Of a stretch of 64,000 bases of DNA, positions 40,301 to 43,300 are shown in pieces. Under the pieces are notes generated by a model. It had not been told where the DNA came from. It searched no databases and saw only the letters and a list, made by a program, of their open reading frames with translations. Each line of letters begins with the position of its first letter. Positions within the stretch are counted from its first letter, which is position 1. Source of the stretch: Thalia democratica (lineage: Eukaryota). The position numbers and the translations under genes were made by a program. The stretch spans positions 44,206,001-44,270,000 of the forward strand of contig OZ241833.1 in the NCBI GenBank assembly GCA_965202585.1, written 5' to 3'.

Positions 40301-43300
40301 ACAATACTTAAAATTTTAGTAATTAAAAATATTATGGTGTGATTTTAGTTAAAACAATGACATGAAGTTGTTTCAAAGAGCTTAGAATGTTTTTTATGAG
40401 CTATTACTTTGTGATTTATATGGTATAAAAGTTTAAGAATAAGTTAAGAGTTTATTAAAAGTATAATTTTAATTGATTAGAAATAGATTAATAATTTAAT
40501 TGATGTTTACAGATTAGCAGAGCACATCACCTATGTGCACACTCATTTAGAGCATCCTCCATTGAAATTCAAACCAATTGATATGGCTGCTATGAGGTAA
40601 ATATCATAGTTATCTTCATAAAAAATATATAAATTTGCTGACAAAAAAAGTTTGGTTTTTAGTCGAGAGCTGTAATTTTATATCTTTGATGAATTAGTTT
40701 AATAGCAAAACTTAAGCATCAATATCTTGATTTTGATGCTATATAAGTCACATTAATATTTTTTCTACAGGAAGTACATCGCACTATGCCAGCAGAAGGA
40801 ACCAGTAGTACCTGCGGAACTCACTGATTACATAACAGCTGCCTACGTGGAACTCAGGAAGGAATCCAGGAGGAGTCAGGATACCACGTTCACATCTGCC
40901 AGGACTCTGCTCAGTATCATGCGACTTGCTACTGCATTGGTTGGTTTCTTTCATTAAATAACAAATCTTTAATATGTTGAACATGAATAAATTGAGTGAA
41001 ATTGGTGAGCAAAGATTACAATTTTTTTGTTCATTTTCAGTTTATTATTAAGGTCAGATTTTGTGTTACTTTCATTTAAAACAAATAGTTAATAAATTTT
41101 TTAGTAAAAATCAGCACCCTTAGCATGATGTTTCTGAAATCCTAAATAATCATATTTAGTTTATTAAACTTTATCAATGTTATTCCAGATAGTATTTTAT
41201 TTATTAGATAAAAGTTTGAGCTAAGATGGTTCTCCAGAATCTTCCCATCATATTTATTTCAAGTGTAAAATCTTTGTAAAAGTTTTTCAAAAAATAAAAG
41301 GTATTTTCTTGAAGGCCGCAGAGTCGAGTGCAAAACTTTTTATATTTTATTATAAGAAAATATTTATTAGTATTGCACTTGTCCCGGCCTTCTAGATTAT
41401 TTTCATTGAATTTAACAAAATTTTCTGACCATAAACTATTTGACGCTCTTGAATTGAAATAGTAGTTGTCATAGCATAAATTATTAACTAATTTTTTAAA
41501 CCCTCAAAAGTTGTGTTTGCGAAAACTGGTAATTGCGCTGTTTTATTTTTTAGAAATTAAAAAATACACATTTGAGATGAAATATTTTTTGAATGTTTAT
41601 TTAAAATACTGTTAACTTTCTACAAAAATGCGATATTGACAGACTAGTCTTGTGTCGGGCAATCAACATTTTACTTTGTTTATTGCACTTCCCTAGACTA
41701 GTTTGTCAATCGTTCACACTTCCCTGTGCACACTGGAAATTCACACTAAACTTCCCTAGACTAGTCTGTCCATCGTTCACACTTCTCTGTGCACACTGGA
41801 AATTCACACCTAACTTCCCTATAGACTAGTCTGTCCATCGTTCACACTTCTCTGTGCACACCAAAAATTCACACCAAACTTCCCTAGACTAGTTTGTCCA
41901 TCGCACAAACACTAAAAGCATGTAAATTCCCTTTTATAGATCTTCTCTGGGCTCGTTAGTCGTAAAAGCATCAATAAATAGTATCTCAGGTTGTTTAGGA
42001 GTACAAAAAACTTGTGCACTTGTTTATTTAAGTACATGTATATAGCATAAAAGTATATATTTTTGAGGCAGTTGGTACACCTTGGTTTAAGTACAGCTTC
42101 GTACACAAATTTTATCTTAAGTGAAGTTTAAGCTCATGTATAATTATATAACAGACTTCAGATTTGTTTTTTACAGGCAGTGATTTTAATTTTACCAATA
42201 TCTTATCATGTTTATGTAACAGCTTTTTTAACTTTTTAATAGTAGTTGTTTTTCACGAAAATTTTTACGTAAAATTCTTTTCATGTAAATCAAAGTCAAT
42301 ATATCACGGTTATGTAGTTGTGGTTTTTATTCAAACATTTTTATTTTCATGTAAAGCATTTTGTTTGAAAGCCGTTATTTGTTAAAATTTCCTGCTTTTT
42401 GTTAAAGCATTCGCTTTTTAAATTTTATAAAAAGTAACTTATTCTTGTGAAAACTTCAAGTTTACGTGTTTTTTTACAGTAACGTTATTAATCAGTATAG
42501 CTGGAATTGTTTTGAAAAATTTTCTATATCACAAATTAAAGAAACATTATTTCATTGCAGTTTTGTTTACCTAAAACTCTTAACCGGATAAGTTTTTTAA
42601 ATGTTGGTCTAGAGCAGCAATTCTATACTACAAGTTATGTAATTTAATGTTTGTTAATTGTGATTTTTACTTATAAGTTAGTATTTAACTGTAATTTTTA
42701 AGATTAAATAAACTCTTTGAATTTTACAATTTTCTATATTTAATAGCTTAAAGTTACAAAATTTAATACTATTTTGTATATTGGGGGTAAATTTGGTAAT
42801 AACTTTCCAAAAAAGGGTAAAACATGTAAAAAGGTTAAGAATCGCTATAGAGGAAAAGTATTATATTTATTGATTTATAAATTTAGCAATCATAAAGTTG
42901 TTTGATCAGTTATACTACTAGAGTTTAACTGAAACGTACCAACTTACTAGCTTGTTATGAAAAGAAATTAACAAATACATTTGAGTCTAAATAATATCCT
43001 AGCAATTTTTATTTTGTTTGCTTTAAGCTGGTAATTTAAAATCAATTATTTTCAACCAATGAAAATTAGTTGCTGGTTAGTATCAAAAACATTAATTAAT
43101 TGAAAAACAGAAAGCTGGAAATATAAGATCATTAATTTTTCCACTTTAATGATTTAATTTATTATAATAATCATTATTAATTTTCCAGGCACGTTTGCGC
43201 TTAGCAACAAGAGTTATTGCGGAAGACATCAATGAAGCCATGAGGTTGATGGAGATGAGTAAAGACACTTTGAATGTTTCAGAAGCTGTTAAGAGGTAAA

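Follow-up and report, generated by a model that had tools for sequence, protein, structure and literature searches.

Intronic miR-92 hairpins in a tunicate MCM7 gene

How old is the association between the miR-92 family of microRNAs and the replication-licensing gene MCM7? In human and mouse, the miR-106b~25 cluster lies in MCM7 intron 13 and is co-transcribed with MCM7 (PMC5940376, PMC3082007). The question is raised outside vertebrates by a 64-kb stretch of the Thalia democratica genome (contig OZ241833.1, positions 44,206,001–44,270,000; hereafter the window, numbered from its first nucleotide), for which a prediction made from the letters alone had placed a miR-92 hairpin in the MCM7 intron that corresponds to the vertebrate host intron. 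The element in question is a pair of hairpins on the sense strand of the penultimate MCM7 intron. We conclude that it is very probably a tunicate miR-92 pair homologous with vertebrate miR-106b~25 and likely to be transcribed with its host.

The canonical miR-92 precursor, hairpin 1, occupies 41307–41396 on the + strand and was recognized by its fold, its best Rfam matches and its tunicate orthologues. The 20-mer TATTGCACTTGTCCCGGCCT is found at 41371–41390 (+), on the 3′ arm, and all 20 nt equal UAUUGCACUUGUCCCGGCCU, the miR-92 of Halocynthia (PMC5399378) and the cross-species consensus (PMC8001136). From base composition, about 4e-9 copies of this 20-mer would be expected per window and about 5e-5 per 802-Mb genome, and its 19-mer core has a single copy genome-wide at up to two mismatches. 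A near copy on contig C2 (two mismatches) was considered as a further canonical miR-92 and rejected, having no fold.

The region 41295–41410 forms one long hairpin (−35.5 kcal/mol, z −6.0), the stability of which was matched by none of 200 dinucleotide-preserving shuffles. The miR-92 seed, AUUGCAC, corresponds to nt 2–8 of the 3p product, with UAUUGCAC starting at 41371 on the 3′ arm. Alignment with other tunicates predicts a 22-nt mature 3p sequence, UAUUGCACUUGUCCCGGCCUUC, at 41371–41392 (+); it pairs with 41311–41335 in the minimum free energy (MFE) pair table, and 20 of its 22 positions are paired, in keeping with the stable, imperfect stem of about 22 or more paired positions that is required for miR-92. 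Because C41392 pairs with G41311, a 2-nt overhang puts the predicted start of the 5p (star) arm at 41313 (41313–41335, +), in line with the original prediction. The long, AU-rich and partly self-paired apical region that had been described is also there, spanning about 35 nt (41336–41370). Haplotypes or relatives have small insertions in it, at 41352 and 41353, which is what a loop under no constraint should show. At relaxed Rfam thresholds, the best matches to hairpin 1 are all miR-92 families: mir-92_2 (30.1 bits, E 0.002, gathering threshold 70), mir-92 (24.4 bits, gathering 47), ciona-mir-92 (24.1 bits, gathering 56) and mir-235 (21.3 bits, below gathering).

A second hairpin and the missing third

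The original prediction described a single hairpin. The miR-92 hairpin in the MCM7 intron stands, but it is accompanied by a conserved second family member 310 nt downstream. This second miR-92-seed precursor, hairpin 2 (41630–41712, +), has an MFE between −31.9 and −34.2 kcal/mol, with z between −6.8 and −7.0, and the two hairpins exceed all other 90-nt structures of the intron in stability by a wide margin (−34.2 and −32.2 kcal/mol vs −22.3 for the next). Its mature 3p product, predicted from the tunicate alignment, is UAUUGCACUUCCCUAGACUAGU (UAUUGCACUUCCCUAGACUA) at 41681–41702 (+). Within it, the window, Clavelina and Styela all have UUAUUGCACUUCCCUAGACU, 20 nt being unchanged across the three species; this sequence is unique in the window's own genome and is present in metagenome contigs L030–L032. 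The lower stem shows three compensatory pairs across the three tunicates.

A 63-bp tandem repeat of 3.4 copies (41687–41903, +; Tandem Repeats Finder, 91% matches, score 353) has its first copy start within the 3′ arm of hairpin 2; the unit repeated includes ACTTCCCTAGACTAGT but not the seed. Hairpins 1 and 2 are 310 nt apart in the window vs 132–145 nt in other tunicates.

Other tunicates have a third hairpin in this intron, and a counterpart was sought in the window. At about the expected place, 42553–42572 reads CATTGCAGTTTTGTTTACCT, which is like the third tunicate member, CATTGCACTGTTATTGATCT, at 15 of 20 positions. This candidate (CATTGCAG... at 42553) was rejected: its seed is broken and it forms no hairpin (z −0.6). 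Genome-wide, the search for a third member gave near matches only, none of which folds. We therefore treat the third member as lost or decayed in the window, and 42553–42572 may be a decayed paralogue.

The host gene

To build the MCM7 model, the Limulus and human MCM7 proteins were searched against the DNA by tblastn, and the splice sites were then inspected. The mapped part (31585–43782, +) comprises 14 exons covering human residues about 38–719, with two N-terminal exons unmapped, and the spliced model translates without stops. The 84-nt exon (40513–40596, +), whose 28-aa block is present in eight of ten other animals, is followed by the 169-nt exon ending ...MRLATAL (40771–40939, +), which is supported by the gene model, tblastn and RNA contigs. 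The host intron then extends over 2249 nt in phase 0 (40940–43188, +), from the donor GTTGGT at 40940 to an acceptor CCAG ending at 43188, and the next exon (43189–43295, +; gene model and RNA contigs) resumes with ARLRLATRV....

Splicing is seen in RNA-derived contigs from two runs, an RNA-like run of the same organism and a marine metatranscriptome, which contain four MCM7 junctions: 40195>40513, 40596>40771, 40939>43189 and 43295>43542. The joint across the microRNA intron, 40939>43189, is present in runs X3 and X5. Low-depth contigs of the RNA-like run cover the intron from 41487 to 42392 at a depth of 2–7, vs about 200 on exons; this faint coverage fits pre-mRNA and says nothing on processing or microRNA output. 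The hairpin thus lies as originally described, sense to MCM7 in a phase-0 intron after ...MRLATAL that is preceded by exons of 84 and 169 nt.

Of the 13 donor sites mapped in this gene (31749–43295), eight start with GTT (GTTGGT, GTTTGT, GTTCGT, GTTAGA and others) and not with GTA or GTG. Two of the four junctions in RNA contigs have such donors, 40195>40513 (GTTCGT) and 40939>43189 (GTTGGT). Five further copies of the terminal part of the MCM7 exon ending at 34268 are found in the next intron (34313–34701). Within the microRNA intron, the stretch 42620–42950 reaches a depth of 18,000–26,000 in DNA runs, with many internal deletions, and is a very high-copy short interspersed repeat.

The window, which is very AT-rich (26.8% G+C), sits in a 57.8-Mb contig of the 802-Mb genome. 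In a maximum likelihood tree of 45 MCM7 proteins, its MCM7 falls inside the tunicates (support 100/100) and forms, on a long branch, a group with Clavelina and Phallusia that leaves Styela outside (100/98). Related MCM7 exon sequences occur in the marine metatranscriptome, most contigs being 90–99% alike, which may indicate a pelagic tunicate.

Conservation among tunicates

The intron between ...TAL and A..., hereafter the TAL|A intron, holds three miR-92-seed hairpins, with the seed on the 3′ arm, in each of Clavelina (intron of 1038 nt), Styela (1763 nt) and a metagenomic tunicate (47% G+C). The last was found by an exact-pattern scan of metagenome contigs and has the same layout: an exon ending ...ATAL, the same three mature sequences and the next MCM7 exon. 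In order, these sequences are UAUUGCACU[A/U]GUCCCGGCCUU or UAUUGCACU[A/U]GUCCCGGCCUUC for the first hairpin, UAUUGCACUUCCCUAGACUG for the second and CAUUGCACUGUUAUUGAUCU for the third. Judged by sequence, hairpins 1 and 2 of the window are the orthologues of the first and second. The 3p of hairpin 1, GUAUUGCACU[U/A]GUCCCGGCCUUC, varies at a single position among three aligned tunicates, and alignments of the window, Clavelina and Styela show that the arms are kept, with compensatory pairs, while the loops have diverged. A contig of run X4, from a related organism, is about 90% identical and takes in both hairpins as well as the 169-nt exon.

The same intron across animals

Ten annotated MCM7 loci were compared with the window, the exons of each being placed by exact matches to its own protein. 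All 11 animals examined have the TAL|A intron, and in tblastn with the human protein the window intron falls at human L616|A617. The vertebrate reference is the gar, in which the TAL|A intron (13593–15500, after ...STAL) is in phase 0 at the same residue as in the window and contains four hairpins above the Rfam gathering thresholds: mir-17 at 13708–13787, mir-17 at 13832–13910, mir-19 at 14245–14327 and mir-25 at 15073–15156. The claim that the hairpin and the vertebrate miR-106b~25 cluster occupy the same intron is thereby supported. In gar, mir-19 follows the mir-17-type hairpins and precedes mir-25, whereas mammals, with a cluster of three members, have no mir-19 there.

The rattlesnake was dropped as the vertebrate reference in favour of gar, its intron 13 lacking miR-25 and miR-17. 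Its MCM7 has 15 coding exons, as in human, with exons 12 and 13 forming the 28-aa (84-nt) and 56-aa (169-nt) blocks and intron 13 following ...ATAL. This exon map agrees, together with the published location of the human cluster cited above, with the human exon sizes and intron number that the original prediction gave. In Crotalus tigris, intron 13 (6060–9142, 3083 nt) gave no match to mir-25, mir-17 or mir-19 and contains no ATTGCAC at all, and the cluster seems to be absent from its MCM7. Exon-sized protein fragments were also tried as a route to orthologous introns and abandoned, the contigs (666 and 918 nt) being too short.

In six of the 11 animals the TAL|A intron lacks an AUUGCAC hairpin: amphioxus (intron length about 14.8 kb), the starfish Acanthaster (377 nt), the limpet Lottia (272 nt), the annelid Paralvinella (234 nt), the horseshoe crab Limulus (404 nt) and the rattlesnake (3083 nt). 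ATTGCAC seeds in Limulus, amphioxus and Acanthaster were rejected, as they lie outside hairpins. The intron thus survives without the microRNA in six animals, and so the suggestion that the miRNA constrains loss of this intron is unsupported. The idea that the miR-92/MCM7 relationship is retained in an invertebrate fared better. Retention holds, but the host is a tunicate, a member of the sister group of vertebrates, which makes it less surprising.

A second cluster in POLA1

The genome has a second miR-92-seed cluster on contig C9 (30,934,095–30,935,055, +; L029 3095–4054), with five hairpins that carry [U/A]AUUGCAC on the 3′ arm. Its flanking exons match the catalytic subunit of DNA polymerase alpha (E 4e-15 and 3e-6), and the cluster lies in a POLA1 intron. 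Both miR-92-seed clusters are therefore in replication genes, MCM7 and POLA1.

Origin of the miR-92/MCM7 linkage

Sequence, fold, host intron, splicing, tunicate conservation and the identity of position with the gar cluster are matters of observation. Intron, strand and family all agree with the gar cluster, and the linkage therefore predates vertebrates, being at least as old as the common ancestor of tunicates and vertebrates. In the mechanism we propose, the MCM7 pre-mRNA would serve as the primary transcript, Microprocessor would crop both hairpins out of the intron and Dicer would free the 3p-arm microRNAs with the seed AUUGCAC. Output of the microRNAs would thus follow the transcription of a replication-licensing gene and so be linked to proliferating cells.

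Several points weigh against a host-transcribed pair homologous with miR-106b~25. Processing, the choice of arm and the coupling to MCM7 expression are expected by analogy with vertebrates and Ciona, and a promoter inside the intron may drive the hairpins instead. The apical region of hairpin 1, at about 35 nt, is long. For Ciona, Table S2 of PMC8001136 gives the miR-92 clusters as intergenic. At Rfam gathering thresholds the whole window gave no match, hairpin 1 included; the orthologues of hairpin 1 in Clavelina and Styela also fall below gathering, so the Rfam models appear strict for tunicates.

If miR-92 genes had entered or arisen in the same MCM7 intron separately in tunicates and vertebrates, it would fit that amphioxus, starfish and three protostomes have a TAL|A intron free of miR-92-type hairpins, and members of the family are indeed mobile, as the POLA1 cluster here and the jigr1 location in Drosophila (PMC4441384) illustrate. 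We nevertheless regard such convergence as improbable: the two sister groups agree in intron, strand and family and in how far the hairpins lie from the upstream exon (roughly 100–430 nt), the layout is common to at least four tunicate lineages, and the shortest history is a single gain in the tunicate–vertebrate ancestor. Yet more unlikely is that the hairpin is a conserved structured element of the intron, or an unprocessed relic microRNA, that serves the splicing or regulation of MCM7. A relic would be compatible with a 3p small RNA that in this species is a prediction, with the long loop of hairpin 1 and with the third cluster member already lost in the window. However, conservation is focused on the almost invariant 22-nt 3p arm, while the 5p arm and loop vary with compensation, which argues for selection on the mature microRNA, and the relatives in Ciona have been sequenced, detected and shown to have a knockout phenotype (PMC8001136, PMC2884542).

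Chance deserves the least weight of all. An AT-rich inverted repeat might by accident contain the miR-92 seed, and TATTGCAC alone is indeed present four times in the window against 2.6 expected, but the match here is of 20 nt and not 8, is unique in 802 Mb, comes with a z of −6 and is found in the same place in other tunicates. Its uniqueness in the genome and conservation in Clavelina, Styela and the metagenomic tunicate refute a chance foldback. A single, ancestral miR-92/MCM7 linkage remains by far the best account of the locus.

Implications of a pre-vertebrate linkage

The location of vertebrate miR-106b~25 in MCM7 and the miR-92 clusters of Ciona (PMC8001136) were known; that a tunicate MCM7 hosts miR-92 is possibly new. 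The full texts searched contain no statement that miR-92 lies inside MCM7 in tunicates, although the linkage may be listed in the supplement to PMC11848845, whose tables cover Ciona. The evolutionary implication, that the pairing of miR-92 with MCM7 is older than vertebrates, is modest but clear. The vertebrate miR-106b~25/MCM7 relationship thereby gains a point of reference beyond vertebrates: the tunicate–vertebrate ancestor had miR-92-family hairpins in this exact MCM7 intron already, ahead of the genome duplications of vertebrates. The MCM7-hosted cluster is accordingly the copy that kept the ancestral context, which vertebrate miR-17~92 and miR-106a~363 did not. The finding also corrects the impression left by the Ciona literature, in which the clusters are tabulated as intergenic. 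Seen beside the POLA1 cluster, it points to a link, open to testing, between the output of miR-92 and the transcription of replication genes, and it offers the tunicate as a simple system in which to ask why proliferation genes host the oncogenic miR-92 family.

Comparison with known systems

In Ciona, the reported clusters are csa-miR-92a/b/c, cin-miR-92a/c/d and cin-miR-92b/e; members are both expressed and required for function, the notochord being disturbed when csa-miR-92c is knocked out (PMC8001136). Like the clusters described here, they consist of several miR-92-family hairpins over about 1 kb. In the window, Styela, Clavelina and the metagenomic tunicate, the cluster is inside MCM7, whereas the Ciona clusters are listed as intergenic (PMC8001136).

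The Drosophila miR-92a/b genes are embedded in jigr1 and co-expressed with it, and the fly microRNAs repress their host (PMC4441384). The host is unrelated to MCM7, but both are cases of the miR-92 family in a protein-coding gene. Feedback of the jigr1 type is not indicated for MCM7, since no GTGCAAT site is found in the ~1 kb past its stop codon (the presumed 3′ untranslated region).

A closer parallel is provided by the hemichordate Ptychodera flava, in which MCM7 has seven strong sense hairpins (L015 17186–18276 and 21255–21579) with AUUGCAC at positions 2–8 of the 3p arm. The TAL|A intron holds two of them, and the other five are in the intron that precedes the 84-nt exon. All seven match Rfam mir-4818 (RF04013; E 9e-10 to 2e-4, below gathering). 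Seed, host gene and, in part, intron are those of the tunicate pair; in contrast, the 3′ half of the mature mir-4818 sequence (...AGUGGGGCU) is unrelated to miR-92 and five copies are in the other intron. The literature regards mir-4818 as a separate family born in hemichordates. A 2025 survey gives the '4818~mcm7' linkage as hemichordate-born, and '17~mcm7' and '19~mcm7' as vertebrate-born (PMC11848845). On the strength of the same seed, the same host gene and two copies in the same intron, mir-4818 could instead be a diverged, MCM7-hosted descendant of miR-92. This belongs to a wider scenario that we offer tentatively and think, as a whole, rather doubtful: the TAL|A intron would be the ancestral deuterostome home of Mir-92/Mir-17~92, the linkage would have been lost in amphioxus and echinoderms, vertebrate mir-17 and mir-19 would have arisen among tandem miR-92 paralogues of the sort that tunicates still show, and the family may be under selection for read-out with S-phase transcription, as its MCM7 and POLA1 hosts hint. 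For mir-4818, histories with two gains and with two losses are equally short.

The closest known system is vertebrate miR-106b~25 itself. The tunicate intron differs from it in holding miR-92-seed hairpins only, two in the window and three in other tunicates; neither the window nor the other tunicate loci gave an Rfam match to mir-17 (the family of miR-106b and miR-93) or mir-19. In its 3′ half the tunicate mature sequence is of the miR-92a type (GUCCCGGCCU) and not of the miR-25 type (GUCUCGGUCU). Nonetheless, the vertebrate cluster likewise includes a Mir-92-family member with the 3p seed AUUGCAC, as seen directly in gar, and it shares with the tunicate pair the host gene, the strand and the phase-0 intron between ...TAL and ARLR....

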